From NCBI RefSeq assembly GCF_902652985.1, contig NC_047023.1, positions 20,336,001 through 20,400,000 of the forward strand: a stretch of 64,000 nucleotides of DNA, read 5' to 3'. Source of the DNA: Pecten maximus (taxonomy: Eukaryota). Position numbers and translations under genes: made by a program. The notes beneath the pieces are model-generated. The model searched no databases, was not told where the DNA came from, and worked only from the letters and a program-made list of their open reading frames with translations. Numbering within the stretch: the stretch's first letter is position 1; each line of letters begins with the position of its first letter. Below are positions 1,668-29,827 of the stretch, piece after piece.

Positions 1668-1673
1668 TTTATT
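1668..1673 (-). terminator. Probable polyadenylation signal of copy A
   Basis: AATAAA on the minus strand about 250 nt after the stop codon at 1922. Confidence 0.5.
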
Positions 1674-1921: not shown

Positions 1922-4900
1922 TCAAAATTTGGTTGGAGTTTTAATGATGACCTACAAAAAAGAAAAAAGATAATAATAACTAGCCATTGTTTTCATTTTT
2001 TATACCTTTAGAATAGGTTAAATTAAGAGATCATGCATGTTTCATTACTGAAAGTTATGTTGTAATATACTATGGAATTTTGTTATCGTCTATAATTTAA
2101 TACTAAATCATTAAAATGTTGTTTATTTGTTAACGGAAGATAGGTAAAGAGGTAGTAAAGTCTTACCGTTTTGAGTTCTGAATACTCGTGTAAACCATAC
2201 TCGCCCCTGAAAAGGGAGAAAAAAATCATTCAATTAATTTAATAAATAATATTTCTATTTTGATGCATCATAAATGCGATACATCAATTTGTTACAATAT
2301 ACTGTTCTTTCAAAACAAATGCATATGAGTCAGAATGCAGAGACAAAAAAGTAATCGTAAATATGAATTAACTTACAGTTCTCGTCCAATACCAGACATC
2401 TTGAATCCTCCGAATGGACACTGGGCACCAAACACATTGAAGGAATTCACCCTGTAGAAAACAAGAAATCTCCAAATAATGTTATTGGTATTTTTGTGCA
2501 TACGCGAAGAAGTGCGTAGATATTTCGATACGAGGGAACCGTTGGGATCATGACGAGGACAACAACCCCTAGAAGAGGGACGCTAGGGCCGGACACAAAA
2601 CCAGGTACTTCACCTTTGCCTAATTCATGCGAGATTTAAAACAATAATCTAAAGAGCAGGCCATACACAAAACCAATGGTATTGTCTCTATGTGAAAGGT
2701 AAAATTACATTTACACAAATATTAGCTAAGGAACAAGAATCAAGATAAAGGGAAGTAAACTATAGCTGTGTATCATGTTAGATCGTCTAACAATTACATA
2801 CAGTACTTACAATACTGGTATGTAAGGAAGGATTTGGAATTTGGACGCGATAATACAATCGTGAATACGTAAACAGAAATTTGGCATTAGTCGAAGACAG
2901 TAACCAGATAGAAATCAAAGTTGATGGTCCAGCCATTCTGACACAGAAGAATTTGTGCATGCGCTTGCTTACTTAGTTATACCGTTATATCTTCAGCAAG
3001 AGTTTTACAACTGTTACCATATTTGACCCATAACCAATTAAGGCAGCTTTGTTTTAATGTCCGAAGCTGAAAATAATTTATTGTTTATTGGTGACGTACC
3101 AGATTGTTCCGGCTCTGACATGGTTGCTGTAGGTCATGACCTTGTCAAGGTCCTTGGTGCAGATACCGGCAGCCAATCCGTAATTTGTTCTATTTGCCCG
3201 CTGTACGACATCATCCATAGTTCTGAACTTGGTGACTTGCATTACGGGACCACAAATCTGTAACAAGCACACCAAAATGGTATAATGACGCTTCCACAGG
3301 TCAATTTACCTAACAGTCAATTAAATGCATCACTGACCAATCGATTATGGATATGTTATGAATTCGACAGTTTCCACAGACAGGTATTTATTAATATGAT
3401 CTCTCATTTGAAAAAAAAAAATATTAAGTTGCAAACTATGGTTTGTCGGACTTGACTGGTGAATGTACCTCCTCTCTGCCGATGCGCATTTCTTCCGTGA
3501 CACCAGAGAACACTGTCGGCTGGACGAAGTATCCCACGGTACCTTGACGCTTGCCACCACATTCTAGTTTGGCTCCCTGCTGCACTCCGCTTTCTATCAG
3601 GGCGATGACTTTGTCGAATTGCTCCTGGTCAATCTGTGATTAACATAGTTCTCATTATCTTTAGATGATTGCGTTTACATTTGTTTTTGCTGTATTTAAA
3701 CTAAGATCATATTTTAAAAATCGACATCTAAACGATGAGATCAGACAGTAGACTATATCAAAAGGTTTTTTTTTTTATGGAAAAGCAGATATATATTTAT
3801 ATTTAGAGTACGAAGCAAAAGTAAGATAGTTATTATAATTGCAGATTTGGCAATGCATAATGTATATATGTATATATGCAATATGTATCGTTTGAATAAA
3901 TATGAATTTATATATATGAATATATATTATTTGTACCTGGGGTCCACATATGGTCCTAACATCGAAAGGATCCCCGACCACCCGTGATTTGGCCTTCTCT
4001 ACCAGTTTCCTGATGAAGACATCATAGATCTCCTCGTGGACGTAAGTCCTGGATGCGGCACAGCAGTACTGTCCCATGTTGAGGAAGAGTCCATTTTGGC
4101 ATGTTTCCACTGCTCTGTCCACTAGCAAATAGAAGCGATATTACAATACATTACAGTAAGAAGGTTAATAGGAAGGGGTATCGCCGTGAACGCTAAATAC
4201 GAAGTAATACTTTCAAGGAGGAAATGGGTTTGTCTTACAATCACGCAGCGCCATCACCAAATAAAAACAAAATGACAAAAAAGTTTCAAGGATGAGATAT
4301 TACAATTGGTGAAATCCTTTCAAGGAAGGTAAATGAAGGAATACTGTAGTCATCGACAGCAATAGAAAAACAGCAGTTACATATGCATATTGATACTCTT
4401 CAGAAGGAACTTTACTCAATAGTATCTACAATATTGTAATGTATAACGGTAACATATATTTTTCAAGACGAGGTTGTGAAAGCTCTATTACTCAAACAAA
4501 CCATAACTACATTGTCTGAAGGTTTATTAACATTCTTCTGGAGAAAAGATATATTGCTCACCATCGGCGTCAGCAAATATGACATTGGGACTTTTCCCTC
4601 CAAGTTCCAGAGTAACCCTCTTGAGATTGGTACGTGCAGCGGCCTGCATCACAATCTGTCCTACCTATGATTGGAAAACAAGAATATACAAATTTGATAT
4701 CAACAGTATTACTGATATATGTAAAGATTCAAAATTATGTTTTATCCATGAACCACGTACCTCGGTAGATCCTGTAAAAGCGATCCTGTCGATGTCGTAG
4801 TGTTCCGAAATAGCGGCGCCTGCTGTTGGTCCATAGCCTGGAATCACGTTCACTACACCAGGGGGAAATCCAGCCTTAATAAATTAGTTTAGAAATCACA

Positions 4901-7900
4901 CAGAGTAAACAAAACAACAAATCAATAACCTATGTGTTAAACACACTTTTGTTACGTGTCAACGTTTGATGCAAAATCAGTGAAAGAAACGCCTTAAAGA
5001 GTCACCATTTTATGAATTTCCTGCTTCTTTAATTAAAATCAGAAAGATTGAATGAAGTATCTTTTACAGTGATTCGTTGAAAGCCTACCTCCTTGATGAG
5101 CGAGGCTGTGTAAAGAGCGGTGAGTGGGGTCTGCTCGGCCGGTTTAAGGACAACCACGTTACCGCAGGCTAGAGCAGGACCAAGCTTCCAGGCCATCATG
5201 AGGAGAGGGAAATTCCACTGGAGTTAAAGAAGACATTTATATAGGTAATGTACAATATTTGATAGTATCATCATCATGTGACAGTTTTGTTTTATTTAAT
5301 TGTTACTGGTATTTTCGTACTAAATCAATTAATCAAAATTGCCGGGTCCTATTTGATTATAACAATATTTTTGTAGATTTATTTGTGTAGCTATACAATA
5401 CAGCATATTTTACAAAACGATTCAGAAAAAGGGAAATATAATGCCACTAGTTTCTTGGTAAATAAAAGCTTGGCCATCTTGATTTGTATACTTATGCTCT
5501 AACAATGTATTTGTTTACGAGAGAGATATAGTTCATCAGAAAGGTGTGAAGTAACTCGTTTACATAGAAGGGTGGCAAGTTTCCCTCACGTAAAGGTGGA
5601 TTACGTAAGGTGAAATGTGTATATGATACATATTCCTGTAGTGTAAAATTAAAGTTGACAATAACTTACATGAAGAATCTGACCGCAAACTCCCACGGGT
5701 TCATGCTTGGTGTAGCAGAAATACTCGCCGTCTACAAAAGAGCGTTATCAAATACCCACAATATTATATTAAAACAAGAAGATATTTCATAATTAAAAAA
5801 AAAAAAGGGTTTTTATCAACATAAGATCTAACAAATCTAAATAATCAATACCTGTATATCAATGTTATATACGTGATAATGATAACAGGAATATAATTAT
5901 GTGTTAAGCGCACATCATTATCATAATAACTTTAGGGAGAAGAATTAGTGTAATAAACACAGAAATGGTCTTATAAAGGGATCACCGCAAAATGCTACTT
6001 TACCCGTGAAAATGCTTTTGTAAAGGAATTATCACAATATTGCAACTTAAGCCAATGACAATGGTCTTGTTGAGGAATAATTACACTTGGTACTTTAACC
6101 ACGAGGATGGTAAGGAATGATCACACGTGATACTTTACCCATGGGAATAGTCTTGCCACAGATCTTGTCAGTCCAGCCAGCGTAGTACCTGATACACTTC
6201 ATCACAAGGACCATGTCAGTGTTGTACGAGTCAGTGAAAGGTTTGCCACAATCCAGAGTCTCAAGGCTCTACAATGATGAACGATGGAGAACAATGGAGA
6301 GCAATGGAGAACAATAGAGAACAATAGAGAACAATGGAGAACAATATTCATCATGACTAATCTTTCTTGATTTGTTGCATTTTGTGAATTATCATGAGCT
6401 TTCTCGGTATTTCTGAAACTACATAATATAGACTTTTAAATAATAAGGTCATTTTATATTGGCAAAAAATGAAATCGATACGGAACGACCCAAGATAAAA
6501 CAATTAATCAAGGATATATGAATATGCATCCGCTGAAACCAAGTGCTCTTTAACGAAAGCATTCCATCCGAACCAATTCGTTCATTTCTTCCCATAATCA
6601 ACTCACTGCCAAGTAGAGCCTGTCCCGTTCTATAAGATCAGCCAGTCTGTTTAGTAGGCGTCCTCGGTCACTGGCATCCATATTGCGCCATACAGATCCG
6701 GTCTCTATCGCCTTTTTCGCCGCAGCAACAGCCCTGTCAACATCGGCCTGTGGTGATATAAAAAAACAAGAAATCCATCCAACTATTAATTAACCCAAAA
6801 GCCAGGATTTGGTATCTCACCGATCAAACGTATGGAAATTTTCTGATATTGAAACTAATTTGCTGTACTCTGATTTACTTACAAATCGCATATTAAGTTG
6901 TTTAGGAGACAAACAATCGTGTTTATACTGCTTGTTTCTGTTTAGATAAGAAATCTGGTACGTTCATGTATTAACGTAAAATGTTTGCAGCATGACGCTT
7001 TGATATAAAACACGGATACATTACTGAGTTATCTCCCTTGCCTGTAAGCTCTTTCCGGTTTCAACAAGAAAAAGAAATCAATTCGGCATCGGAACAAATT
7101 CGCCAAATTAAGGATAAGAAACTGTTTGCTACCAGAAAATAAGATTTTGTATTTTATTAAGGTTTCCTAAAGACAAAAGAGCGTATGCTAGACTTACAGG
7201 TTTACGATAAACAAGCAATCGTATATACATAACGGTTGCCAAGACTGAACAACGCTTTATCTAATTAGCTACCGACACTGACCTTGTCACCTTCTTGTAC
7301 GTCAACGGTCTTCTTTCCAGTGGCCGGGTTGAGGACGTGAAATGTCTTTCCGCTGGCAGCGTTTACCCATTCATTGTTGATAAACAGCTACAAAAATAGA
7401 AAAAATATATATCATATATCGAATATCTTTTTATTTTTCTGTAGAATTAGAAAACTAGCATATATTTGTCGTTATTAGGACTTTCTAGTATAGTATTATG
7501 GTAATTAGGACTATCTAGTATAGTATTGTAGTAATTAGCTCTGTCCAGTATATTATAGTCGTGTTTAGGATTGTCCAGGACACTTCTGTCGTAATTAGGG
7601 CTGTCTAGTGTATTATTGTAGTAACTAGCACTGTCCAGTATATCATTGCAGTAATTAGAACTGCTCAGTATATTTTTGGATTAATTGCATTGTAGGACTG
7701 TCTAGTAAGGTGGTCCACAGGATAACCGTCTTCTGTTGCATTGAAGACTTGCAAATCTAACTCAAATATGATTCCATGTTCTTAAAATAAGAGCCGAGGT
7801 GGTTACCATGGAAACGCTAGGCATATCACCAACGAACACCGAACGCCTCAAACTTTATAATATACAAGGAATTATAATACTTAAGAAATCACAAAACTAA

Positions 7901-7998
7901 TATACCGTGAAAGAAATTTTCAAACTTTATCACCATGCTATACATACATGTTTAAATCTGATCTCGGGGTTTCTGATTGGTGTAGCCATTGTTGTCAT
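1922..7998 (-). CDS. ALDH1A-type aldehyde dehydrogenase copy A; probable lens Omega-crystallin (ALDH1A9-like), 14 coding exons, 495 aa
   Basis: Exons (minus): 7948-7998 [17 protein letters not shown]; 7283-7387; 6607-6747; 6139-6268; 5670-5731 (..GQILH); 5089-5217 (WNFPLLM..KPAEQTP); 4761-4874 (..FTGSTE); 4562-4664 (TLELGGKSP); 3937-4121 ([11 protein letters not shown]); 3469-3633; 3100-3257 (ICGPV); 2377-2451 ([13 protein letters not shown]); 2167-2206; 1922-1951 (VIIKTPTKF*). All introns GT-AG, phases consistent, no internal stops; internal exon sizes 105/141/130/62/129/114/103/185/165/158/75 match vertebrate ALDH1A genes. No mitochondrial leader. The ALDH call is secure; the crystallin identity is inference. 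Confidence 0.95.
6271..6345. repeat. 10-bp tandem repeat (ACAATGGAGA) abutting the copy A coding-exon-4 acceptor
   Basis: About 7 units running directly into the acceptor AG at 6270-6269. Confidence 0.85.
7455..7706. repeat. Degenerate ~30-bp minisatellite (GTAATTAGGACTGTCTAGTATAGTATTGTA-like)
   Basis: About 8 diverged units in the intron between coding exons 1 and 2 of copy A. Confidence 0.75.
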
Positions 7999-8574
7999 CT
8001 TGTCTCCAAGGTCTGCGGCGAACACCTACTGTATATGTTTCACTAATTCCGTCAAACCTGCAAAAACAAACATAGGATAGGTCGTAAACGATTCAACTTT
8101 CTCGGGGAACACTTATAACAGAATTATATTTTCGAGAATAATACTTGCTGGAAATGTAAGTATTTACCTATAAATGCTTGATATCTTATATTTTATTCTG
8201 TACATTCAGAATGATTTTCTCAAATTCATTTTCTGTATGACCGTCCTGAAATATACACAATCGCGCATTTTCATCAGTTTTAACAATAAAAATATCAGGA
8301 AAATGGATTAAAGGAAACTTAAAAGCTACTGTTATGATCTTACGTACGGGAACCACGTATAGCACCAGGTTGCAAACATCTATAGATAAATAGCTAAATA
8401 CAATAGTCAGTGAGAATCGTGTGACATTTCAAGAGTTAGAAATGTATCATGATGAATTGTAGCCGCTAAGGCAAGGCTATTTACCTGCATGTCGATCAAT
8501 TCCTTCTTGTTAAAAAGAGGTAAAAAATATGTCGACCACAAAACCTAAATCTTTGACTCTGATATCTTTCCCAC

Positions 8575-8812
8575 TTTTTTATATGTCTGGTATCGTTTTT
8601 TATATGTCTGGTATCGTTTTTTATATGTCTGGTATCGCTTTTTATATGTCTGGTATCGTTTTTTATATGTCTGGTATCGCTTTTTATATGTCTGGTATCG
8701 TTTTTTATATGTCTGGTATCGCTTTTTATATGTCTGGTATCGTTTGTTATACGTCTGGTATCGTTTTTTATATGTCTAGTATCGTTTGTTATACGTCTGG
8801 TATCTTTTGTTA
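8575..8812. repeat. 21-bp minisatellite (TTTTTATATGTCTGGTATCGT), about 11 copies
   Basis: Directly visible; produces the spurious FYMSGIV-repeat ORF 8529-8831. Confidence 0.95.
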
Positions 8813-9328
8813 TCGTAATATTATGTTATAAAATATTATTTTCTGCTTGTTCGTGTTTTTGTTACATATATTTGCTAGAAGTTGGATATGTTTAACATTG
8901 AATTAAATTATTCTTTTTTTTAAATCTTATATCAAAAACATGTGAATAGCGAAGTTTAACCCCGAAGAATAATATGACGTCACGAATATCAAACGCAAAA
9001 CAGCAATAAGAACGGCATGACTTTCGATTTACTCCATCGCAAGGTCTAAAGCTGATCCCGTTCGTTTTAGGTAGATCGTGAATAGTCAATACAATATATA
9101 TATATAACATACATAACTTGTGGTGTTACTAAGCATGCAATAAAAACGCCTTTCAAATAGTCAAGAAGCTAACCAAGTGATTTCTGTCAGGCTTGTAGAA
9201 TGGGACATGATCTACTCTCACATCCAAATCTTTATTAAAAAAATATAAGTCATAACAACGTATTACTAAAAATTACCACAGGGACAATTAAATTGAATTG
9301 AAATAGTCAAAATATTATCCAAGAAGGT

Positions 9329-11697
9329 AAAATAAACAGAACGTGACTATACCTGTGACCTTGAAATAAACAGAACTTGACAATACCTGTGACGTTATAA
9401 TAAACAGAACGTGGCTATACCTGTGACAATTAAATAAACAAAACATGACTATACCTGTAACAATTAAATAAACAAAACATTACTATATACCTGTGACGAT
9501 GAAAAAAAAGAACGCGACTTTACCTGTGACGATGAAATCAACAGAACGTGACTACCTGTGACGTCATAATAAATAGAACGTGACTATACCGGTGACGATG
9601 AAATAAACAGAACATGACTAAACCTGTGCCGATGAAATAAATAGACCGTGACTATTACTGTGACGTCATAATGAATTGAATGTGACTATACATGTGACGA
9701 TAAAATAAAACAAAAAGCGTGACTATACCTGTGACGTTAAAATAAACAGAACGCGAAAATACCTGTGAGGTTCTAATAAACAGAGCGTGACTATACCTAT
9801 GACTTCATAATAAACAGAACATAACTGTACCTCTGACGATGAAAAAAGAACGTATCTATACATGTGACGATTAAATGAATGAAACGTGACTATACCTGTG
9901 ACGATAAAATAAACAGAACGCGCCTATACCTGTGATGATATAACAAACAGTCCGTGACTATAGATTTGACGATAGAATTATCAGAACATGACTATTCTTA
10001 TGAAGATAGAATAAACAGAACGTGACTATTCTGATGAAGAGAGACTTAACAGAATGTGACTATACCTGTGACGATAAAATAAACAGAACGTGACAATACC
10101 TGTGATGATATAACAAACAGTCCGTGACTATAGATTATGACGATAGAATAAACAGAACGTGACTATTCTGATGAAGAGAGACTTAACAGAATGTGACTAT
10201 ACCTGTGACGATAAAATAAACAGAACGTGACAATACCTGTGACGATAAAATCAACAGAACGTGACTATACCTACGACGATAAAATAAACAGAACGCGCCT
10301 ATACCTGTGATGATATAACAAACAGTCCGTGACTATAGATTTGACGATAGAATTATCAGAACATGACTATTCTTATGAAGATAGAATAAACAGAACGTGA
10401 CTATTCTGATGAAGAGAGACTTAACAGAATGTGACTATACATGTGACGATAAAATTAACAGAACGTGACTATACCTGTGACGATAAAATAAACAGAACGT
10501 GCCTATACCTGTGATGATATAACAAACAGCCCTTGACTATAGCTGTGACGACAAAACAAACCGAACGTGACTATAGATTTAACGATATAATGATCAGATC
10601 ATGACTATTCCTATGAAGATAGAATAAACAGAACGTGACTATACCATAAACGATAAAATAAACAGAACGTGACTATACCTGTGACGATAAAATTAACAGA
10701 ACATGACTATACCAGTGACGTTGAAATAAACAGAACGTGACTTTATCTGTGACGATGAAATAAACAGACCGTGACTATACCTGTGACGATTAAATTAACA
10801 GAACGTGACTATTCCTATGAAGATAGAATAAACAGAACGTGATTATGCATGTGATAATTAAATAAACAGAACGTGACAATACCTGTGATGATAAGAAAAA
10901 TATAACGTGACTATACCTGTGACGATAAAATAAACAGTCCGTGACTATAGCTGTGACGATAAAACAAATCGAACGTGACTATAGATGTGACGATAGAATC
11001 ATCAGAACATGACTATTCTTATGAAGATAGACTTAGCAGAATGTGACTATACCTGTGACGATTAAATAAACAGAACGTGAAATACCTGTGACGATAAAAT
11101 AAACAGAACGTGACTATACATGTGACGATAAAATGAATAAGAATGTGACTATATCTGTGATGATAAAATTAACAGAACGTGACTATACCTGTGACGATCA
11201 AATGAATAAAACGTGACTATACCTGTGACGATAAAATAACATAACGTGACTATACCTGTGACGATAAAATAAACATAACGTGACTATGCCTGTGACGATT
11301 TAATAAATGGAACGTGAAATACCTATGACGATTAAATAAACAGAACGTGACTATACATGTGACGATGAAATAAACAGAACGTGACTATACCTGTGACGAT
11401 AAAATAAACAGTCCGTGACTATAGCTGTGACGATAAAACAAATCGAACGTGACTATAGATGTGACGATAGAATCATCAGAACATGACTATTCTGATGAAG
11501 AGAGACTTAGCAGAATGTGACTATACCTGTGACGATTAAATAAACAGAACGTGAAATACCTGTGACGATTAAATAAACAGAACGTGAAATACCTGTGACG
11601 ATAAAATAAACAGAACGTGACTATACCTGTGATGATAAAATAAATATTACGTGACTATTCCTATGACGATAAAATAAACAAAACGTGAATATACCTG
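9329..11697. repeat. 34-bp satellite (GACGATAAAATAAACAGAACGTGACTATACCTGT), about 70 copies, in intron 1 of copy A
   Basis: Directly visible with recurring variant series; the upstream end coincides with the exon-1 donor. Confidence 0.95.
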
Positions 11698-11727
11698 TAA
11701 GTCTGTGTACTTCTGCTGCGGCTGTGG
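11695..11727 (-). other. Putative non-coding first exon of ALDH copy A
   Basis: Begins about 30 nt downstream of TATAAAAG (11756-11749) and ends in TTACAG|GTATAT (GT at 11694-11693). A matching acceptor tttgtttttgcag| opens the ATG-containing exon at 8057. The TSS is estimated from TATA spacing only. Confidence 0.65.
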
Positions 11728-11748
11728 TTTCTCTGGCTGACGACGGCA

Positions 11749-11830
11749 CTTTTATAGGAGACAGCAAGACATACTGATTAAAACCTGAGTACGTCCACTT
11801 AGCTTTGCGCACTCAAGCTGACGTCATCAA
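11749..11830 (-). promoter_or_regulatory. Copy A promoter: TATA box and perfect CRE adjoining/overlapping a Pax6-like site
   Basis: TATAAAAG at 11749-11756 (minus); TGACGTCA at 11819-11826; minus-strand GCTTGAGTGC (11818-11809) fits the 3' half of the Pax6 paired-domain consensus GCWTSANTKM, and a full site would overlap the CRE. Confidence 0.7.
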
Positions 11831-13837
11831 CGTTTGATGAAAAATTGCCTCATCAATTTGTAAATTACATAATTATTTTCAAACATCGGAGAAACATTTA
11901 TGTAAACGTCATTTATACTCGACAATATATTTTAATTATTTGCAAGAACAAAACATATAATCACGATTTGTGAATATGGATTGTAAATGATTTTAATAGC
12001 TATTTTTGTTTTTTTGTATTTTTGGAATATTTTTAAACGTGTGCATTGAAACGATATTACAATCTTACATAGGGTAAACTCGTTCTGTGCCACTGTATAC
12101 TATAGAGTTGGATTCTATAAGCTGAAACTCGTTCCAGGCGCTGTATAATATAGAGGTTGATTCGATAAGGTAAAACTCGTTCTGTGCCACTATATTTTTT
12201 CTTCTTTTTGCATTTTGCAATTATTTTTAAACGTGTGCATTGAAAATGATATTGCAATCTTACATAAGAAACTTGGGAGCAAATATTTCGTCATTTCGGT
12301 AGTGGAAATTTTCAACGCCAATTCCCCAGAAACACAAATAAACCGTCCAGAACTCAGTACATCAAATAGACATTTACAGACAACACAAACACATATGACA
12401 ATGTGAGAAGGTAAACTTGACAACTCCAACATGAAAGCATATAAACGAACAGAGATGAGGTTACGGGGAGAATGGAAGGCAGGGCAATTTTTTAACAAAA
12501 CGGGGAGAGGGATATAACATATCTAACCTTTCAAATTTACAACCATGTTAAATCTAAGATTAAGGGATATAATGAAATTCCCTCATAATTCAATCTTAAC
12601 ACATCTGACCGCGAAAATTAACCAAACAGAATAGCGCCTTTATTACATTATAAAACACACGTAACACAGAGGAAATATGACTATACCTGATGAAAAGAGC
12701 GAGTATCTTACTTTTGATGAGAAAAAAGGTAAATTATACGGTGTCTGTTACAATGTGTACTGAAGATAGACAGCTATTGTCATTTAAAGGAATTGTTTAG
12801 GTAGTGTTTGTTTAAACCATAAAATTAACAAAGATATGTTTAGATCTGATTGAAAGTTTTGTAAACGGTGGGTGGGTTCAATAATACTATCTTTACATAA
12901 TCTTACGTTTGAGATGTAGACAAGGGGTTTAAGATCGAGGTTTTTTTGTTATCTTTCGCCGAAAACATAAAAGGTCATCAAAGCATCTTCAACACTTTAC
13001 TTTGAAGGCGAGGAGGCAGAAATTGGAACTTAAAAATTTAACATATGTCCTTTTAATTGAACCTGTATCATATTTCATATGAACTTCAAGGGAGCATTTC
13101 TTTAGAAAACATGGGGTGAAAACGTGTTTACGGTGCTACATTTAACGTAATGGCAGAAAATGAAATATTTTAAAGCAGTACATAGTTTGTGTAATGGAGT
13201 TCATCGCAGTGGAGTAAGAGCAGCTTGTGTTTACAGTGTATACTCATCACGTCACTTTGTACCGAGACATGTTTCACAAAGTGTTTTTACCCATTTACCT
13301 GTGAAATCCAACACCTTTCTCACGACACAGAGTGCAGTTAGAAAACACACTTAGAAAAATATCTCTACATGCACCAGATCACACATCAATCATTGCTGCA
13401 CATTTATTTACATGTTAACCAATTACATTAGTTGTTACTCCAAAACGTGTTTCGACATTTAAACAACACAAAGCTATCAGCACGATCAAGTTCAAGTTCA
13501 TCTTATTCCGTGGACCTATCGGCCCATACGTGAAAAATAACAAATTGATTATACATAAATATTTAATACTGTAAATACATAAAAAATGGAGAATGATCAA
13601 CATGATATTGTAAGCTTAATCTAAAAACATGCGTCTCAATGTCAATCTCGATCAGAATGTGGCTATCTAGGCAAACCATTTATAACATCGGTTGATATTT
13701 TCTGTAATTACGAATATATTTACAACATGCAGATAATTTACTTCTCTACTATACTACACTAAAGAATATCGGTTAATAATGCGTACGTCTATTTGCCTCA
13801 CATTATATAGATGTCTACTACTGGTCGTAAGGTATCT

Positions 13838-14200
13838 AGAAGTGGATCGTATAAAGTAGGGCTCTTCTTGTGCCAATTATAATATAAAGATGGATCGTAT
13901 AAGGTAGCTCTCTTTTTGTGCCAATTATAGTGTAAAGGTGAACCGTATAAGGTTCAAATCATTTTATGTCAATTATAATGTAAAGGTGAATTGCATGATG
14001 GAGCACTCTTTTTGTGACAATTATAATGTAAAGGTGGATTGTATGATGGAGCACTCTTTTTGTGACAATTATAATGTAAAGGTGGATTGTATAAGGTAGC
14101 ACTCTTTTTGTGCCATTGTATAATCTAGAGGTTAAATATATAAGGTTACATTCGTTGTGTGCCAGTGTATAATATAGAGGTGGATTCTGTAAGGTTACCT
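13838..14200. repeat. Degenerate 48-bp minisatellite (related units at 12070-12192)
   Basis: GGTGGATTGTATAAGGTAGCACTCTTTTTGTGCCAATTATAATGTAAA-like units, about 7 copies. Confidence 0.8.
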
Positions 14201-18000: not shown

Positions 18001-19975
18001 GAACTACAATGTAGTACTGAGTGGTATAGAACTACAACGTAGTACTGAGTGGTATAGAACTACAATGTAGTACTGAATGGTATATAACTACAATGTAGTA
18101 CTGAGTGTTACAGAACTACAATGTAGTACTGAGTGTTACAGAACTACAATGCAATACTGAGTGGTATAGAACTACAACGTAGTACTGAGTGGTATTGAAC
18201 TACAATGTAGTACTGAGTGTTACAGAACTATAATGTAGTACTGAGTGTTATAAAACTACAACGTAGTACTGAGTGTTACAGAACTACAATGTAGTACTGA
18301 GTGTTATAAAACTACAACGTAGTACTGAGTGTTATAAAACTACAACGTAGTACTGAGTGTTATACAACTACAACTGTAGTACTGAGTGTTACAGAACTAC
18401 AATGTAGTACTGAGTGTTATAGAACTACAACTGTAGTACTGAGTGTTATCAAAACTACAATGTAGTACTGAGTGTTATAAACTACAAGTAGTACTGAGTG
18501 TACAGAACTACAATGTAGTACTGAGTGGTTAGAACTACAATGTAGTTACTGAGTGGTACTAGAACTACAATGTAGTACTGAGTGGTATAGAACTACAATG
18601 TAGTACTGAGTGGTTCAGAACTTACAATGTATTACTGAGTGGTATAGAACTACAACTGTAGTACTGAGTGGTATAGAACTACAATGTAGTACTGAGTGGT
18701 ATAGAACTACAATGTATTACTGAATGGTATAGAACTACAACGTAGTACTGAGTGTTACAGAACTACAATGTAGTACTGAGTGTTACAGAACTACAATGTA
18801 GTACTGAGTGGTATATAACTACAATGTAGTACTGAGTGTTACAGAACTACAATGTAGTACTGAGTGGTATAGAACTACAATGTAGTACTGAGTGTTATAG
18901 AACTACAATGTAGTACTGAGTGTTATAGAACTACAACTGTAGTACTGAGTGTTATAGAACTACAATGTAGTACTGAGTGGTATATGAACTACAATGTAGT
19001 ACTGAGTGGTATAGAACTACAATGTAGTACTGAGTGGTATAGAACTACAATGTAGTACTGAGTGGTATAGAACTACAATGTAGTACTGAGTGGTATAGAA
19101 CTACAATGTAGTACTGAGTGGTATTGAACTACAACGTAGTACTGAGTGTTATAGAACTACAACGTAGTACTGAGTGGTATAGAACTACAATGTAGTACTG
19201 AGTGGTATAGAACTACAATGTAGTACTGAGTGGTATAGAACTACAATGTAGTACTGAGTGGTATAGAACTACAATGTAGTACTGAGTGGTATAGAACTAC
19301 AATGTAGTACTGAGTGGTATAGAACTACAATGTAGTACTGAGTGGTATAGAACTACAACGTAGTACTGAGTGGTATAGAACTACAATGTAGTACTGAATG
19401 GTATATAACTACAATGTAGTACTGAGTGTTACAGAACTACAATGTAGTACTGAGTGTTACAGAACTACAATGCAATACTGAGTGGTATAGAACTACAACG
19501 TAGTACTGAGTGGTATTGAACTACAATGTAGTACTGAGTGTTACAGAACTATAATGTAGTACTGAGTGTTATAAAACTACAACGTAGTACTGAGTGTTAC
19601 AGAACTACAATGTAGTACTGAGTGTTATAAAACTACAACGTAGTACTGAGTGTTATAAAACTACAACGTAGTACTGAGTGTTATAAAACTACAACGTAGT
19701 ACTGAGTGTTACAGAACTACAATGTAGTACTGAGTGTTATAAAACTACAACGTAGTACTGAGTGTTATAAAACTACAACGTAGTACTGAGTGTTATAAAA
19801 CTACAACGTAGTACTGAGTGTTACAGAACTACAATGTAGTACTGAGTGGTATAGAACTACAATGTAGTACTAAGTGGTACAGAACTACAATGTAGTACTG
19901 AGTGTATAGAACTACAATGTAGTACTGAGTGGTATAGAACTACAATGTAGTACTGAGTGGTATAGAACTACAAAG
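15095..19975. repeat. 28-bp satellite (GTAGTACTGAGTGGTATAGAACTACAAT), about 174 copies
   Basis: Homogeneous 4.9-kb array between the two ALDH paralogues; each unit contains AGTACT and the near-palindrome ACTACA-A-TGTAGT. Confidence 0.98.
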
Positions 19976-20168
19976 TACATGCAGTACTAACTAGAATATG
20001 TATGGTATAACCTCTATATTGTTTGATATGATTTAGTTCTGGCAGATAAACAAGTAACTCAATGTTTTTGCAATATTGTAATGTATTACATGGAAGTCAC
20101 GGTGTAATAAAAAGTTTGTTATAAACTGTTAAATCCTTTCCTTGGAATAACAATGTCAGTCTGCTAAA

Positions 20169-23100
20169 TCACTTCGTCAACGGGTTCATTAATACCTGAA
20201 ACATAAAAAAATAAACATTGGATAATTTTACATAGTTATTTCAATAGAAATGCCAATGATGTAAAAATGGTACTGCCTCAAAACATATATATGGCGGAGC
20301 TGTAATAGGGGTAAACACATGGCGGGGTTAGTAGTAGAGGGTAGAGGAGTAAACACATGGCGGGGTTAGTAGTAGTGGGAAGAGGAGTAAACACATGGCG
20401 GGGTTAGTAGTAGGGGGTAGAGGAGTAAACACATGGCGGGGTTAGTAGTAGTGGGTAGAGGAGTAAACACATGGCGGGGTTAGTAGTAGGGGTAGAGGAG
20501 TAAACACATGGCGGGGTTAGTAGTAGGGTTAGAGGAATAAACACATGGCGGGGCTAGTAGTACGGGGTAGAGGAGTAAACACATGGCGGGGTTAGTAGTA
20601 GGGGGTAGAGAAGTAAACACATGGCGGGGTTAGTAGTAGGGGGTAGAGGAGTAAACACATGGCGGGGTTAGTAGTAGGGGGTAGAGAAGTAAACACATGG
20701 CGGGGTTAGTAGTAGGGGGTAGAGAAGTAAACACATGGCGGGGTTAGTAGTAGGGGGAAGAGGAGTAAACACATGGCGGGGCTAGTAGTACGGGGTAGAG
20801 GAGTAAACACATGGCGGGGTTAGTAGTAGGGGGTAGAGAAGTAAACACATGGCGGGGTTAGAAGTAGGGAGTAGAGAAGTAAACACATGGCGGGGTTAGT
20901 AGTAGGGGGTAGAGAAGTAAACACATGGCGGGGTTAGTAGTAGGGGGTAGAGGAGTAAACACATGGCGGGGTTAGTAGTAGGAGGTAGAGGAGTAAACAC
21001 ATGGCGGGGTTAGTAGTAGGGGGTAGAGGAGTAAACACATGGCGGGGTTAGTAGTTTCTCCATTTCTCCATTTATGGTCAGTAAAATGCCAAAATCGCTG
21101 ACATGACGTAATAATCACTGTCGGATAAGGAGTTCACTCTACAAATTCCGTTAGAACCGGTAGTTATCTTAATTATTGATCTATAAAAAATGACTAAGCA
21201 AAATAACTTTCAGATTCCTTCTTTATCTATAAACATGTATTTTAGAAATGTTTTAAGAATCATGGACCTTAACCTTTGAAACAGACCTTTTTTTCTACTG
21301 TACAAAGACGGAGTATGCACTGTCCAACATCACTTTTTAATACAGATAGTTTAGGTCAAAAATATGTTGCATCTACTGTATGATTACTCCATGTTACGCA
21401 ATGGTGTGTTTTTTTACATTGACGGATCAGAACTTCCTGACCCAGATGACGCAATGGTAGAACTAACCAATCAATTACATATTTTAAAAACAAATTTTAA
21501 CAGATGCTATCCGACAACAGAAAACTCGTGTGGAATGGTCAGTTCAAAATTACCAGATGCCCGAAAATATTCTCTACTCACTTCACAATAATTGTGCGGT
21601 AAAATAGTAAAATAATATACAGCTGTAGCTAGTCTCGTTGTGCCACCTAATGCAAAACTTTACATTTCATTATTTACCTTCATATAGTTTGATAGTATTT
21701 TACATAAGATAGTATACAGATACATTTCGTTTTCTATTCAAATTATATCTTTTCAAAATTACGTTTACATATAAAACACTTTAGGACAGACATGTAAACT
21801 GGTAACATACTTACCGTTTTGATTTCAGAATATTGTGCCAAACCATACTCTCCTCTGTAATACGAAGGTGTTGATATGTGTTCATGCATCAGCGAGGTAT
21901 GTACAAAGTATCAATATTTTCATTATAATACACCATATCATATCAACAGGAAAACGGAACTAGAAATTGCATGATGGTTTATTAATTACATGTAGTTATT
22001 TTTCGTTTGCAAGCCAAAAAACGCGCAATGATCTTTAATAATATTGTGAAAATTATTTTCAAATGTTTTAAAGATGGAATGGGAAAATTACGTGGTTAAC
22101 AAAGGGAATGTATTAACAGTAGGACATTCACTTACAGTTCTCGGCCGATTCCGGACATCTTGAATCCTCCAAACGGACTTTGCGGGGTGACAATATGGTA
22201 TGCGTTTACCCTAAAACGTAATCAAAAGAAGCGTTCGTAATACGAAATTAAAAGCAACTCGGCTCGTTATACTAAATGATGAACATACCCGCTCATTATA
22301 TATAGTAATAAACATACCCGCTCATTATATATAGTAATAAACATCCCTGCTCGTTATACAAAATAATAAACATCCCTGCTCATAATACAAAATAATAAAC
22401 ATCCCTGCTCATAATACAAAATAATAAGTATCCCCGCTCATTATACAAAATAATTAACATCACGTTTCAATATACAAAATATTTTGTCTCGAAAATCGAT
22501 AAATCTGATTAGGAGAACTTTCGTTATAACTACAGTTAGAATATTTGTCCAACACAGATCTCCCAGTACGACGATATGGTTGCTAATATGCATTGTGATA
22601 TCAACACGAGCCATAAATTCAGGCATTGAATAGTTTTTACTCTCATTGACCTGCATTCATAGATCAATCACTTCAACTTTCTATAACATGACAAACCATC
22701 ACTTTCATATCTTTATTATTTAGTTTTTGTATGAATTCATGCAGTCGACCTTGAACTCATTTTTATATACTAACTTAAAAGAAAGGCATATCCTAATACC
22801 ACACATTTTATTAATAGGTCAACCAGTTCGCCTTAAGTAGTAGTAAACGCTTGTCCAGATTCTCCACCACATTATTCGAACACTTGAAACAATGTGTGTT
22901 AGTCATCGAATACTTTTTTTTATCTTACAACGCTAACGGACCATTTATCAATTTGGAAGAAATGTTCTACGTCAAGCCATTGATTCCCGACAATAAAACC
23001 AAACATTTACCATACTGTTCCGGCTTTGACCTTGTTAGAAAAGGTCACTGCTTTTCCAAGGTCGTTGGTATAAATAGCAGCAGCCAGTCCATAAGGTGTG

Positions 23101-24662
23101 TTGTTTGCTCTTTCGATAACCTCTTCCATTGTCTTAAATTTGATAATTTGCTGAACTGGTCCAAAAATCTGATAAAAAAGAACACAAACATTCTATTGAT
23201 AGTTTCGGTACGTTGTATCTATATTAAGCTAGATTGATGCAAATACTTTGTAATACATTTATGTCGATATTTAACTTCATTGTTACGATTAGATTAGTAG
23301 TTAAAGTCGAAAGTTATCTTCATCGTCACGAATGTTTTAATGATTTGTACACATATATACATATAGGTAAATTATCACAAATATTTAACTATTTTGTATA
23401 TATACCTAACGAAATTATCAGGGATATATTAGTAGCAAATAATTATTTATCATTTTTTCGCTATTGATCATTAATACATGAATCAATACTATTTTAATGG
23501 TTGGTATCGTTTTTCTGCATAATGTGACAATTCTTACGTATGGCTATTAAAGATAATTTTTGTATATTAAACCATGGTATTCGGACTGACAAACTTCAAA
23601 GTGATTTCGGAAGTGACAGTATCCAGACTGTAATGGCCACTAAACTGTTACCTCCTCCTTGCCGATAGTCATGTCCTCTGTGACACCGGTAAACACGGTC
23701 GGCTGGATGAAGTAACCTTTACCCTCTACGGCCTTCCCGCCACACTCCAGCTTGGCACCATCCTTCACTCCTTTCTCGATCATCGATAGAATCTTCTTAA
23801 ATTGTTCTTCGTCAATCTGAAAATGATGATTGCTTTTCGTTTATTGAAATATAACTTTCATAGAAATACATATTGTATGAATAAAAAAGCTCCACCTTAA
23901 GGTTGATTTTTTCAATAAAGATATAACGTGTCATTTCCATTTATTAAAGTGATAAGATTATGAAAATATTTTATCAATAATTAGCCAGGAAGTATATATA
24001 TTACTTGTGGTCCAGATTCATTCTTGGTATCAAACGGGTCTCCTACACTCCTATTTTTGGCTCTATTGATAAGTTTCGCAGTGAATTCCTCGTAGACTTC
24101 CTCTTGGACATACGTCCTTGACCCCGCCGTGCAACACTGACCCATATTGTAGAACAATGCTTGATGTGACATCTCAGCCGCGACGTCCACTGGGATAAAA
24201 GTAAATACGTAGGTGAAGCAGATTCTACTATTCGCAAATGTTCTTAACATTGCTATACCCAGGTATCTCCAGATGGGGTTATTCGTATGACAATGCTGTA
24301 TATCAGTGAAATGTAATACTAATATCTACAAAACATTAGTTATCGTAAGCAGTCTGATTTTTTATCGTCAAAGCGAAAAAAATCCTTTTCATAAAATTTC
24401 ATATGAAATGATTACTCATTGGATATATCAACATAAAGAGTGAGGCGAACACATAATTCTTGGACAGAGCTAAAATTTAAATGAGTAAAGGAAAGAAAGG
24501 GGGAGGGGGTCAGTAGAGTTGTATGTGACTTACAATTAGCATCAGCGAAGACGACGTTTGGACTTTTCCCTCCCAATTCCAGAGTGACACGCTTAAGGTT
24601 AGATTTGGCAGCAGCTTCCATTATAATTTGTCCAACCTGAAAACCCAATAACATATTGAAAT

Positions 24663-24698
<36 letters not shown>

Positions 24699-27600
24699 AT
24701 TTGATTTAAAAATATCAAAATGTGAAAGCGATTAATATGCACCTCAGTTGAACCTGTAAAAGCGACTTTGTTGATATCAGGATGGCTAGAGATGGCAGCA
24801 CCGGCGGTTGGACCATATCCGGGCACTATATTCACTACTCCGGCAGGGAAGCCAGCCTAGGTGTACAAAGACAAAACGAAAGTTAAACAATGATAAACAC
24901 ATACCGTTAGCGTTATTTGTATTATGCCAGTCTAGACCCCATCTACAGCGATACTTGTTATATCCATATCTCTTTGAATAAAGCACCTATATACAAGGAT
25001 GTTTGTGGGGTTTGTTATGTTCCTTCTTCTTTGAATGGACACCAGGTACAGGATGTTAATGGGTTTTGATATACCTCGACCTTTTTTAATACAGACCCCA
25101 TGTACAAGGATGTTAGTCGGATTGAACTGTCCGTAACTCTTTGAATAAAGACATATGTTAAGGGCTGTGAGTGGGGTGTGTTATGCCCCTACCTCTTTGA
25201 ATAGAGACCCCATGTAAAGGGCTGTTAGTCGGGTTTGAACTGTCCCTAACTCTTTCAATAAAGACCTATGTAAAGGGCTGTAAGTGGAATTTGTATGCCC
25301 CTACCTCTTTGAATAGAGACCCCATATACAGGGCTGTTAGTGGGGTTTGTTCGGCGGGCTTCAAGACGATGCAGTTTCCACAGGCTAAGGCAGGCGCTAT
25401 CTTCCAGGACATCATTGCCAATGGGAAATTCCACTAGAAAAAAAACATTCGGACGGTATACAATACAATTAATTTACCATCATGAAATCTTTTTACTCTG
25501 GTGGCATTCATATGTAACCGAAAAATACAAGCATGCTACGACTCAGTTTCTTTAAACGTAGGCCGAATACTTCAATTTGCCAAATCTTGTAATATTAATT
25601 TAGGCTTTCATTAATGCAGTCCCAGTTGTTTAAAAGATGATTAGGCTAATTGCAGTTTTAAAATCCTGATGAAATATGGCACTTCTCAGACTCTTCCTAC
25701 CTGCCTATTTTGAAGATTATACACACACATGTTTTGCAATTAAGGAGAAATGAGATTTTCACTAATCAAGAGATTAAGCTAAACCATCTTTTTAACAACT
25801 GGGCACTGGTGATATGTCACATCGTTTGATAAATTTTAAGCAGAATCATGTGTTCGGATTTTATTTTGTTTTGGCTCTGTTCCAATAAATCATCTTTCAT
25901 CAAAAGGTGGATAAGTCTCATAATACATAGTATTGGTTTGTTAGCAGAATGTAATAACTATTTCATCAACAGAAAAAGTGCATTATCAAATTCAGCTTGA
26001 TATTTTTTTAGTACCGGAATAATCTGACCGCAAATTCCCACTGGTTCATGTCTGGTGTAACAGAAGAAGGGACCATCTGTAAAGGAAATGATGTTTAGGC
26101 TAATTGAAGTATTATGTGTCGATACATAACTAGCTCTAACAGTGATACTACAAATAGAAGCATGTATATTTTAAGATTGGAAATGAACACCAGAAAGTGG
26201 CTGTTGTTATTAAACCATATCATGACGTCAACGAATAAGTGACGAGAAATAAATCAGTTCTTTACCATTGAGATAAAAATATATAATAATGTATTAAATA
26301 CGAAAATACGAGAATTACATGATGCAGTATGCATGGCTGTAAAATTAAAAGGTACCTATTTTTTATTGAAAAGTACTTAAAGTTTAATTACTTGAATTGA
26401 CGTTGTGGATTTAGATAAATAAGAACTACTGCCAAATTGCAAAGACAGATTATCATTAACAAGTCTTCAAGAAAATAAAACAATATGATCCTAAGTGAAC
26501 TTGACATCATATACACACGTACCAACTGGGATGGTTTTGCCACAGATCTTGTCCGTCCAACCGGCGTAGTACCGGATGGTGTTAAGGATCATGCTCATAT
26601 CATTTTCATACATATCTCTGAAAGGTTTCCCATTGTCCATTATCTCCAAACTCTGCAATCAGAAAATGTTACATATTACTTTTTTTTCACCGAAAATGTC
26701 CGTCAAATATAACTTTCTTTCGTAAAACACGTAAATAAATTAATTTTAACAACTGTTCAAATTCAAAGAGTTTGTATTTATATGGCTTTCGATTTGCTGT
26801 GAGTCTAAATTTATACCTGCTGCATATAAAGGTATCATGATAAACAATCATGGATTTGTCTCTTAAAATTTAATGGATTAACAATAGTACTAGTTAAGAG
26901 GAATCATATTACGTTAAGGACCTACCGATATGTACAGTCTGTCCCTCTCGATCAGATCGGCCAGTTTGTTCAGTAGGGTCCCTCTGGTGCTGGCGTTCAT
27001 CAGTCTCCATGGCGAGTCATCCTTAAACGCGGCCTTGGCAGCTTCCACAGCCTTGTCTATGTCAGCCTGAGTACAAATGGAAAAGCATTTAGCCGTCAGG
27101 AAGACAGAGTCCTTATTCATCAGAAAAGCAGCTTGCTTTTATTCCGAAAAACAGAAAAGTTATTCTTCACAAAGGGATGTCAAAAAGGTAGAATATGTAG
27201 TCGTCAGAACGGGTAGGCAAAAAGGCAGCATATTTAATCGTCAGAAAAACAGAATGTTTAACCGTCAGAAAGACATGTTTAGTCATTAGAAAGGGTCGTG
27301 AAGAAGGAAGGCAGAATAGTCAGTCAAGGTCGTGAAGAAGGCAGAATGGTCAGTCAAGGTCGTGAAGAAGGCAGAATGGTCAATCAAGGTCGTGAAAAAG
27401 GCAGAATGCTCAGACGTCAGACGTGTCGTGAAAAAGAAAGAAAGCTCTGACGTGACACAGGATTGTAAAAAGGGCACAACGATTAGTTGTCAGAAAGACA
27501 GAATGATAAATCGTTGGAACTGCAGAATGCTTAGTCTTCAAATACATGTAGTCTTCTTCAGAAAGACAAAATGTTTAATAAGCAGAAAAAGGTCGTCAGG

Positions 27601-29827
27601 AAAGCAAATGAAAAGCAGACGGTTAAGTTATCAGAAAGACAAAAAGAGCAGCCATCGGAAAGCCCGTCTGAAAGGCAGCATTTGTAGTCATCAGAAAAGT
27701 TTGTCAAGAAAGCAGAATGATTAATTGTCTGAAAGAAAGGATCGTCCGAAACACATAATGCTGTCATCAGAAAAGGAGCATGCTCAGATGCTAATGTGCA
27801 ATCGTTTATTAGGTGGTGACGTGATCATAGAATGACATTCACAATGATTTTCTTAAAATTGTTATAATGTAGGAAAGTTAAGATGTTTATTAATCATAAT
27901 CTGGGGTAGCATAGCTGTAGATATTTCAAGAAAAAAATGACTATTTCGAAGTCATGATGCGTAAAAGGTCTCAAAATACACAAATTTGTTTTGTATACTT
28001 AAGGTATACTTTGTTAACAGGAGATTGACAACAAGAGCTCTGTTATAAAGCGCATTTCTTTCTATGTTCATCCTACATTAATCGTAATAGTGCGTAATTG
28101 GTCATGACTTTGACCAAGCTGTATATCTACCTTGTCCCCTTCCTGGACCTCGATGATCTTTTCCCCTGTACTGGGGTTGATTGTGGCGAAAGTCTTGCCG
28201 CTAACACTGTCCACGTACTCATTATTAATGAATAACTGTAACAAAAATAATATACCTGATGTAAACATCATCAACAAATACTAGTAAATGTAAAAAAAAG
28301 TAACGTTACTGAATATATGTAACAACAGACGTAATAATCATTAATATACATACCTTCAGTAAATTAAATTAAATTGTTCATGTCCATTGTTATAAAAATT
28401 ATTATTATCTGTTTGTTAAGCACGAATCATGGATATTTTCCAGACACAATAATGTTTTCTGATGACAGTGTGGGACAGCAACTTTTTGTTATGTTTTCAT
28501 TATATTGTCCTTTAATTATTGTTAATTTGAAATGTGCAATAATAATCAGCAGAATACATTTGTCTTCGAGAACCGAAAAATTATAAACTTGTAAGAGGTA
28601 CATTTTTAGCTCTTCACATACTTGACGTAATGTGATGTAATGTGATAAGTAGTATCTAATCTGACCTGGCACATGACACAACGTTATCTTAGACAGTGCG
28701 GGTAACATGTACCTATACCATGTTGATGGTTGTCATTACTTATAAATACTGATTCGTATACCGTGTATTTGAATCAAAACCACTTACAAAACGGCTACTA
28801 ACACTGAACGTTAAGTAAATTTTGTACTTAGGTTCTTTAGTATTGACCCTGTTGTATATTTTGTCCTTTAGTGTTGACCCTGTTGTATATTTTGTCCTTT
28901 AGTGTTGACGCTGTTGTATATTTTGTCCTTTAGTGTTGACCCTGTTGTATATTTTGTCCTTTAGTATTGACCCTGTTGTATATTTTGTCCTTTGGTGTTG
29001 ACCCTGTTGTATAGTTTGTACTTTAGTGTTGACGATGTTGTATGTTTTGTCCTTTGGTGTTGACCCTGTTGTATATTTTGACCTTTAGTGTTGACGCTGT
29101 TACATATTTTGTCCTTTAGTGTTGACCCTGTTCTATATTTTGTCCTTTAGTGTTGACGCTGTTGTTTATTTTGTCCTTAAGTGTTGACCCTGTTCTATAT
29201 TTTGTCCTTTAGTGTTGACGCTGTTGTTTATTTTGTCCTTTTGTGTTCACCCTGTAGTATATTTTGTTCTTGGATGTTATGCTATGATTTATGTTACATG
29301 TACTCTGAAATTTACGCTTTGATTTATTTGTCCTTTATGTTGTTCAAATACATATTGTCAATAGTCACATTTATGACATGTCCAGCATTCAGGTACACGG
29401 ACCACGTTTACTTTTTCTACCATATTAACAGCGGACCATAGTGGTCGCCAGTGTTGGACATACTTGAATCATGTTATATTATGTATAAGAATGATCCACG
29501 CGTGAAGGTGTATGTATAATATGTCATTATCATCACAAAAGTAGTCCTTTCGGATTTATTAAAAAGAAACTAAGATTATATCAAGTCGCGAGTCCATGTC
29601 GGGATAAAAACTTTTGAAACGACTCCCAATTCAACTGGTGTTCGCGTTCGAGTTCTTGACATGTACGTGTGCGTGGTCCGTCTATAGAGAAACTGAACTA
29701 GCATAATAGAAATGCCACTTCAGATAAGATTTATATATATAGAAGCACAAAAGTTATTAAAAATCGTTACCTGTGTGTATTTTACTTCCGGGTTTCTGAT
29801 AGGATCCGGTAATTGGGCTGCCATCAT
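20169..29827 (-). CDS. ALDH1A-type cytosolic aldehyde dehydrogenase copy B (canonical motifs intact), 14 coding exons, 496 aa
   Basis: Exons (minus): 29771-29827 [19 protein letters not shown]; 28131-28235; 26926-27066; 26523-26652; 26015-26076 (GQIIP); 25305-25433 (WNFP); 24743-24856 (FTGSTE); 24534-24636 (TLELGGKSP); 24005-24189 ([11 protein letters not shown]); 23652-23816; 23011-23168 (IFGPV); 22136-22210; 21815-21854; 20169-20195 (VLMNPLTK*, the least certain exon). GT-AG introns at the same positions as copy A. Confidence 0.95.
20308..21056. repeat. 37-38-bp G-rich minisatellite (GTAAACACATGGCGGGGTTAGTAGTAGGGGGTAGAGGA), about 20 copies
   Basis: Directly visible in the last intron of copy B. 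Confidence 0.95.
22283..22455. repeat. 29-bp minisatellite (AAACATCCCTGCTCATAATACAAAATAAT-like), about 6 copies
   Basis: Directly visible in intron 11 of copy B. Confidence 0.85.
24930..25352. repeat. ~56-bp tandem repeat derived from the 3' end of copy B exon 6 plus its donor
   Basis: Exon-end sequence ctacctctttgaatagagaccccatatacagggctgttagtggggtttg recurs about 7 times into intron 6 with increasing divergence. Confidence 0.9.
27075..27780. repeat. Degenerate 24-30-bp low-complexity repeat upstream of the copy B exon-3 acceptor
   Basis: Recurring GTCAGAAAGACAGAATG / GTCGTGAAGAAGGCAGAATGGTCA motifs. Confidence 0.75.
28840..29265. repeat. 31-bp minisatellite (TTGACCCTGTTGTATATTTTGTCCTTTAGTG), about 13 copies
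   Basis: Directly visible in intron 1 of copy B. Confidence 0.93.

Follow-up and report, generated by a model that had tools for sequence, protein, structure and literature searches.

Two probable co-orthologues of scallop Omega-crystallin stand in tandem in an aldehyde dehydrogenase cluster of Pecten maximus

The Omega-crystallin of scallops has become a standard example of enzyme recruitment to the lens, and it carries a puzzle: the protein is reported to be inactive and not to bind nicotinamide adenine dinucleotide (NAD), yet the residues needed are all conserved. How the gene for such a protein arose and what became of it is the question raised by a stretch of 64,000 nucleotides (nt) of the Pecten maximus genome, here called the window (C9:20336001-20400000, C9 being contig NC_047023.1 of 45,552,881 bp in an assembly of 918.3 Mb and 3983 contigs). 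The window holds two aldehyde dehydrogenase (ALDH) genes, A and B, and its ALDH matches all lie on the minus strand. An earlier reading of the DNA, the original prediction, took A for the lens Omega-crystallin gene and B for its active enzymatic sister, so that the pair would show how the crystallin arose through tandem duplication. A and B are real, but the locus is larger than the two genes then seen: the window covers the central part of a cluster of four genes of the cytosolic ALDH1/2 type, in the order C (-), A (-), B (-), B2 (+), with C and B2 flanking it on the left and right. The reading that we favour, with a probability of roughly 0.55, is that the tandem pair A and C is co-orthologous to Omega-crystallin, A being a derived copy that likely encodes a structural protein unable to bind NAD and C the conservative copy, and that B and B2 are older paralogues.

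Gene models were built from the conserved peptide core of each exon, with the junctions chosen for GT-AG, frame and homology. The splice-aware model of the A coding sequence (window 1922..7998, minus strand) has 14 coding exons, at 7948-7998, 7283-7387, 6607-6747, 6139-6268, 5670-5731, 5089-5217, 4761-4874, 4562-4664, 3937-4121, 3469-3633, 3100-3257, 2377-2451, 2167-2206 and 1922-1951, the stop codon being 1922-1924. The reading frame of 495 codons is intact, as had been predicted, every intron is GT-AG and the translation is letter for letter that of RefSeq XP_033749616.1, a 495-amino acid (aa) protein named 'retinal dehydrogenase 1-like'. A second ATG (Met4), at 7987-7989, corresponds in the protein comparison to Met1 of both Omega-crystallin and C and confirms the product of 492 aa anticipated from that start. 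With its leader the first coding exon spans 7948..8057 (minus strand), 59 nt of 5' leader lying between an AG acceptor at 8058-8059 and the ATG at 7996-7998. Some 250 nt past the stop the sequence AATAAA at 1668..1673 (minus strand) is a candidate polyadenylation signal.

Gene C (C9:20313785-20322174, minus strand) came from a tblastn search of the A exon peptides against the 40 kb left of the window. It is a tandem third copy lying outside the window, ~16 kb downstream of A, and its model, with 14 coding exons and 492 aa, agrees letter for letter with RefSeq XP_033749615.1. Exons 2-13 are equal in length (105, 141, 130, 62, 129, 114, 103, 185, 165, 158, 75 and 40 nt) and in phase in A, B and C, which bears out the matching 14-exon coding structure described earlier for A and B on the same, minus, strand. 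The lengths of exons 2-12 appear to match those of the mammalian ALDH genes, and the intron by which A would exceed the published Omega-crystallin gene, between ...KT and V..., is shared by all three scallop genes. As DNA the four genes of the cluster are ~80% identical. At the protein level A and C are 83% identical, A and B 67%, and B and C 72%; the full-length match to the Pfam family PF00171 (Aldedh) scores 588.8 bits for A, 610.2 for C, 606.4 for B and 602.6 for Omega-crystallin, with a cut-off of 23. An unplaced scaffold of 17,296 bp (C163) is collinear with the C locus at ~92-97% DNA identity and is therefore regarded as an uncollapsed alternative haplotype of that locus, adding no extra paralogue; its protein, XP_033729322.1, is 99.2% identical.

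Relatives of these proteins were sought in a final database search with a profile made from exon-by-exon references of A, B and C and one hemichordate protein (alignment A4). This alignment was picked by local simulation of how held-out or simulated scallop sequences rank; its fragments are misaligned and its hidden Markov model has 126 positions, and it served as a crude filter only, all results being re-tested with full-length proteins. In alignments rich in full-length anchors the exon fragments fell into their correct places, yet the anchors dominated the profile, and an ALDH1A3-like anchor was dropped because vertebrate relatives would fill the list. Exon 9 of A, searched against representative proteins, gave mainly fragments, none from a close relative; P0060, the best full-length representative, brought up only ALDH2-like proteins from other phyla, and by local ranking none of the available proteins would have drawn scallop sequences into the best 120 matches; and an exon-only search gave no candidate inside the length limits. 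The A4 profile matched A, C, B, the Omega-crystallin of Placopecten magellanicus (Q9NJH2, 492 aa), a homologue from Ylistrum balloti and other bivalve proteins, and a cluster look-up added members from Mizuhopecten, Argopecten and, further, Ylistrum. Two trees, of 33 and 25 rows, were computed with IQ-TREE under LG+C20+F+G4. Four scallop genera were sampled, and the data from the other scallops are proteins, so that the ratio of non-synonymous to synonymous divergence (dN/dS) given below is pairwise between A and C.

Both trees place A and C in one clade with Placopecten Q9NJH2, Mizuhopecten XP_021357575.1 and Ylistrum XP_060073179.1, with support of 100/100 and 100/99; within this Omega clade the three proteins from outside Pecten cluster together (82/65). 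Since A and C both fall inside it, they are co-orthologues of Placopecten Omega-crystallin. The latter (ALDH1A9; Q9NJH2 / AAF73122.1) has 492 aa, as A does from Met4, is without a mitochondrial leader and shares with A the C-terminus ...IIKTPTK(V/F/L). The searches found one Omega-type gene each in Placopecten, Mizuhopecten and Ylistrum, as against two in P. maximus. Identity to Omega-crystallin is 91% for the Ylistrum protein, 90% for that of Mizuhopecten, 86% for C, 83% for A and 71% for B. Thus A does belong with Omega-crystallin, as had been proposed, but not as its sole orthologue, and by its closer identity, its length and its canonical motifs it is C, not A, that resembles the published crystallin.

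The same trees bear on the proposal that B is the enzymatic sister left by the duplication that founded the crystallin. A lies inside the Omega clade, B is canonical, adjacent and on the same strand, and the upstream TATA/CRE segment of A, discussed below, is unique in the genome, all of which would suit a single Omega-crystallin orthologue with a new promoter beside its active sister. C, however, is nearer than B both to A (83% against 67%) and to Omega-crystallin (86% against 71%). B (from Pecten, Ylistrum and Mizuhopecten) and B2 (from Pecten, Ylistrum, Argopecten and Mizuhopecten) form a separate clade supported at 100/100, and the P. maximus proteins are 89-95% identical to their own orthologues in the other scallops. 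Moreover, mussel and ark-shell sequences (Mytilus, Tegillarca and unnamed Logan proteins) branch next to the Omega clade as its sister group, with support of 95/91 and 97/96, and a constraint joining all scallop sequences in one clade is 7.5 log-likelihood units worse and is marginally rejected by the approximately unbiased (AU) test (p = 0.046). Because the mussel and ark-shell genes sit nearer the Omega clade than B does, the split between A and B predates the scallops, and long predates their eyes, an outcome that the original prediction had itself named as refuting it; and because the B lineage separated before scallops and mussels diverged, the locus is not a record of crystallin origin by an A/B duplication. 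B and B2 are best regarded as older paralogues conserved across scallops rather than as the sister of the crystallin, and the A/B sister model, largely refuted by the trees, has become very improbable.

If C is the conservative copy, what has changed in A? Thirty-one catalytic and cofactor positions, numbered as in mature ALDH2, were compared. C, Omega-crystallin and the Ylistrum protein are canonical at 31 of 31. B departs only by C303T and by the conservative L252I, a change that it shares with the Omega clade, so the earlier statement that B keeps the canonical motifs holds. A, B, C and Omega-crystallin all retain Cys302, Glu268, Asn169, Lys192 and Glu399, whereas A departs by I166L, P167H, C301Y and F401C. 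Its Leu162-His163 (codons CTT CAT at 5670..5675, minus strand), which stand at Ile166-Pro167 of ALDH2, turn GQIIPWNFP into GQILHWNFP; Tyr297 (TAC, 4066..4068, minus strand) replaces Cys301 next to the catalytic Cys302, which is kept (4063-4065); and Cys397 (TGT, 3252..3254, minus strand) replaces Phe401 and turns EEIFGPV into EEICGPV. Ile166 contacts the adenine ribose and Phe401 stabilizes the nicotinamide, and both are almost universally conserved (PMC8160307, PMC12041015). These contacts and the IIPWNFP motif are kept in B and C and changed in A by I166L, P167H and F401C; the three residues so replaced contact NAD in every active ALDH1/2 enzyme. Among sites invariant in 27 other ALDH1/2 sequences, ranging from sea anemone to macaque, A alone is changed at seven (F70I, N110C, I166L, P167H, K240R, H291Q and F401C); C and B are changed at none and Omega-crystallin at one (Y480S). 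Human and bovine ALDH2 and ALDH1A1/1A2 (PDB 1a4z, 1o02, 4wb9 and 6alj) match A over its full length (E ~1e-220), and macaque ALDH2 is ~64% identical, with Cys302, Glu268, Asn169, Lys192, Glu195 and Glu399 conserved in A; compared with these mammalian proteins A is without Ile166, Pro167, Phe401 and the leader peptide, and its gene has one more intron near the 3' end.

That the cofactor motifs of A are altered had been noticed from the start. The published Omega-crystallin, however, keeps GQIIPWNFP, GQCCCAASR and EEIFGPV, and neither it nor its Mizuhopecten and Ylistrum orthologues carry the changes of A, which are therefore not a hallmark of the crystallin. Confined to A, they fit a copy freed from cofactor binding after duplication.

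In Tajima relative-rate tests with a Mytilus outgroup, the counts were 42:15 for A against C (chi-square 12.8), 45:16 for A against Omega-crystallin and 22:20 for C against Omega-crystallin; A changes ~2.8x faster than C. For the pair A and C, dN/dS is 0.20-0.27 at a dS of 0.35-0.43, so A is still under purifying selection and the silent sites are unsaturated. The introns of A and C are alignable only near the exons (local comparison of window 1-13000 with the C locus). A thus looks like the derived copy and C like the conservative one.

The original prediction gave A an extra non-coding first exon and a promoter with TATA and CRE/Pax6-like sites, CRE denoting the cyclic AMP response element. 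The Placopecten Omega-crystallin gene reportedly has an extra first exon and a promoter with TATA and CREB/Pax6 sites, and upstream of A there are matching TATA and CRE motifs. The strong acceptor 59 nt ahead of the ATG of A leads one to expect a non-coding exon farther upstream. A candidate promoter with a short non-coding first exon lies at 11698..11826 (minus strand), where the sequence motifs are a CRE palindrome, TGACGTCA, at 11819-11826, a TATA sequence, TATAAAAG, at 11748-11755, and a donor, CAG/GTATAT, ending the leader exon at 11698. With this exon A would have 15 exons, compared with 14 published for the Omega-crystallin gene. The 202-nt segment with this candidate promoter is the one that is unique in the genome, and nothing similar to it lies in the 5.8 kb upstream of C; C, too, has an acceptor before its ATG (by 68 nt), and a candidate TATA and donor farther upstream. 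On the other hand, the 104 kb examined contain 12 copies of TGACGTCA, so that a single one is weak evidence, and a rival donor, GCAG/GTAAAT, would end the leader exon at 8485, behind TATAAAAAAG of a 21-bp satellite. Another TGACGTCA, at 8975-8982, with TATAAG near 8930, was set aside as a promoter, the site first proposed being 11695-11830. The extra exon and promoter thus stand at the level of motifs, from which A may be transcribed from the upstream TATA/CRE site.

Two arrays of repeats lie in this region. The larger, a 34-bp satellite of ~70 copies at 9328..11698 (minus strand), begins at the candidate leader-exon donor, has a donor-like CAGGTATAG in each unit and would fall in intron 1 of A. 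The smaller is a 21-bp repeat with 11 copies in the 5' region of A (window 8575-8813), with TATAAAAA in each unit; its last unit stands ~100 nt before the donor at exon end 8485 and would give the rival leader-exon model.

There is indirect evidence that A is transcribed, from the word content of sequencing runs presumed to be RNA and coded as to tissue. Of the words sampled from 1700-9100, four runs of one 2014 study contain a fraction of 0.18-0.23, with 0.23 in the best two, and six runs of three further studies contain 0.07-0.13. Under the A model the exonic fraction of the same interval is 0.239, and because 0.23 is close to it the best runs seem to carry the whole spliced A mRNA without introns.

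These observations can be joined in one sequence of events. An already recruited Omega-crystallin gene would have been duplicated to give A and C. A would then have lost NAD binding, as I166L, P167H and F401C suggest, and turned into a non-catalytic, structural protein, which makes it a candidate dedicated crystallin of lens or cornea, and C would keep the ancestral role under a still enzyme-like constraint. The gene models of A and C, their orthology group, their residue changes and their asymmetry in rate are observed; loss of NAD binding is the most likely reading of A, and its structural role and its lens or cornea tissue are what we infer from it. A bolder version places the duplication in the Pecten lineage and has an enzyme-like Omega-crystallin gene give rise to an A that gained its own promoter and leader exon, shed its NAD pocket and became a purely structural crystallin of lens and cornea, C keeping the shared role; this we put forward tentatively, as a scheme whose parts will probably not all hold.

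Several points weigh against our reading. Loss of NAD binding is a prediction from sequence. Placopecten Omega-crystallin is reportedly inactive though fully canonical, so that a crystallin role need not require the changes seen in A, and C is just as good a candidate for the lens protein. The runs that carry A are coded as to tissue and only guessed to be RNA. The 90% cluster of C holds a full-length Logan transcript-derived protein found on 6 contigs and that of A holds none, a weak hint that C is perhaps the more commonly or highly expressed, or the more often assembled, copy in public data. Finally, the sisterhood of A and C in the trees is weak (63/27). Forcing C, Omega-crystallin and the Ylistrum protein together without A costs 3.0 log-likelihood units and is not rejected (AU p = 0.26), and neither is the species-tree placement, with A and C forced together with Ylistrum (p = 0.28); the duplication of A and C may therefore precede or follow the scallop splits.

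In one alternative C is the functional lens Omega-crystallin of P. maximus and A a redundant duplicate under relaxed constraint, drifting towards a non-lens role, a function apart from NAD or loss. C matches Omega-crystallin in length, in its N- and C-termini, in all motifs and in closer identity, the full-length Logan protein falls in its cluster and not in that of A, and A has undergone accelerated change at otherwise invariant sites. Against this, A retains an open reading frame of 14 exons with all splice sites intact, its dN/dS is ~0.2 at a dS of ~0.4, and nearly all its exonic words are present in the four runs of the one study; selection has kept A, and it seems to be transcribed. We consider this alternative doubtful, but worth keeping in view.

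The phylogenetic points suit another alternative, which concerns timing only and fits either function: the duplication of A and C may be ancient, older than the split of the sampled scallop genera, with the A type lost or unsampled in Placopecten, Mizuhopecten and Ylistrum; A would then be an old paralogue in its own right and no novelty of the Pecten lineage. C is 86% identical to both Omega-crystallin and the Ylistrum protein, which are 91% identical to each other, the grouping of these three without A comes at the small cost given above, and the introns of A and C cannot be aligned past the exon flanks. Yet the maximum-likelihood trees join A with C, weakly; Mizuhopecten and Ylistrum gave one Omega-type protein each in the matches and cluster look-ups; dS between A and C is only 0.35-0.43; and in P. 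maximus the identity to orthologues is 89-95% for B and B2 where A and C reach 82-86%, as is expected of acceleration after a lineage-specific duplication. An ancient duplication seems unlikely to us.

The rest of the cluster can be described briefly. Gene B (coding sequence 20169..29827, minus strand) has, as predicted, 14 coding exons from the ATG at 29827, namely 29771-29827, 28131-28235, 26926-27066, 26523-26652, 26015-26076, 25305-25433, 24743-24856, 24534-24636, 24005-24189, 23652-23816, 23011-23168, 22136-22210, 21815-21854 and 20169-20195, and it corresponds to XP_033750674.1, 'retinal dehydrogenase 2-like', of 496 aa. The last exon needed correction: 20169-20195 encodes the RefSeq C-terminus and has a good acceptor in front, beyond a 38-bp minisatellite, and that C-terminus rules out 21629-21646 as the last exon. 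Gene B2 (C9:20416674-20422718, plus strand; XP_033749581.1, 497 aa), the fourth member, lies ~17 kb past the other end of the window, head-to-head with B at a distance of ~51 kb; across four scallop genera its protein identity is 92-95%. The right flank that carries it contains a run of 100 N. The locus tags OWF48408 and OWF48409 are consecutive, and B-type and Omega-type genes have scaffolds in common, which suggests that the two types are neighbours in Mizuhopecten and Ylistrum too. Outside the cluster, the mitochondrial-type ALDH2 of P. maximus is at C9:10534805-10541998 (plus strand), its exons 88-100% identical to Ylistrum and Argopecten mitochondrial-like proteins, and more divergent ALDH1/2-like genes occur at C16:5.59 Mb, C9:15.57 Mb and C14:28.40 Mb.

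Further repeats lie between and within the genes of the window. A 28-bp minisatellite of ~174 copies (92% matches) occupies 15092-19977, between A and B, and explains why GC skew is strong at 16-22 kb. The 38-bp minisatellite in the last intron of B has ~20 copies at 20307-21055 and separates exon 13 (21815-21854) from the last exon (20169-20195). The 3' end and donor of B exon 6 are amplified in tandem, in units of 56/112 bp, into intron 6 (24970-25350). Upstream of B, at ~31000-32500 (minus strand), broken frames with reverse-transcriptase-like motifs (...ENYRPVSLTSVICK..., ...FADDTKI...) look like a decayed retrotransposon lacking long terminal repeats (non-LTR).

How does the arrangement of A and C compare with other recruited enzymes? 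In birds, delta1/delta2-crystallin (argininosuccinate lyase) is a tandem-duplicated enzyme-crystallin of which one copy lost catalysis and the other stayed an enzyme. It serves as a working analogy for A and C, drawn from an unrelated protein family. Closer in family is eta-crystallin of elephant shrews (ALDH1 class; PDB 1o9j), a lens crystallin that matches A over its full length and represents an independent recruitment in vertebrates; eta-crystallin is enzymatically active.

The canonical Omega-type proteins evolve slowly across four genera (82-91% identity) and are conserved at every catalytic and cofactor site, which is not expected of a purely structural protein. The locus sharpens the Omega-crystallin puzzle, because A, with Phe401, Pro167 and Ile166 gone, illustrates release from cofactor constraint. 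If A is indeed specialized for the lens, it would be an invertebrate case of gene sharing first and duplication and specialization later; with A structural and C shared, the pair would be a molluscan parallel to delta1/delta2-crystallin, and it would serve as a natural control, from which the canonical Omega-crystallins elsewhere among scallops would be seen to remain under enzymatic constraint, though reported inactive. If C is the lens protein instead, A would be a young pseudoenzyme. Either way, the cluster of C, A, B and B2, and not the A/B pair alone, is the right frame for work on expression and biochemistry.

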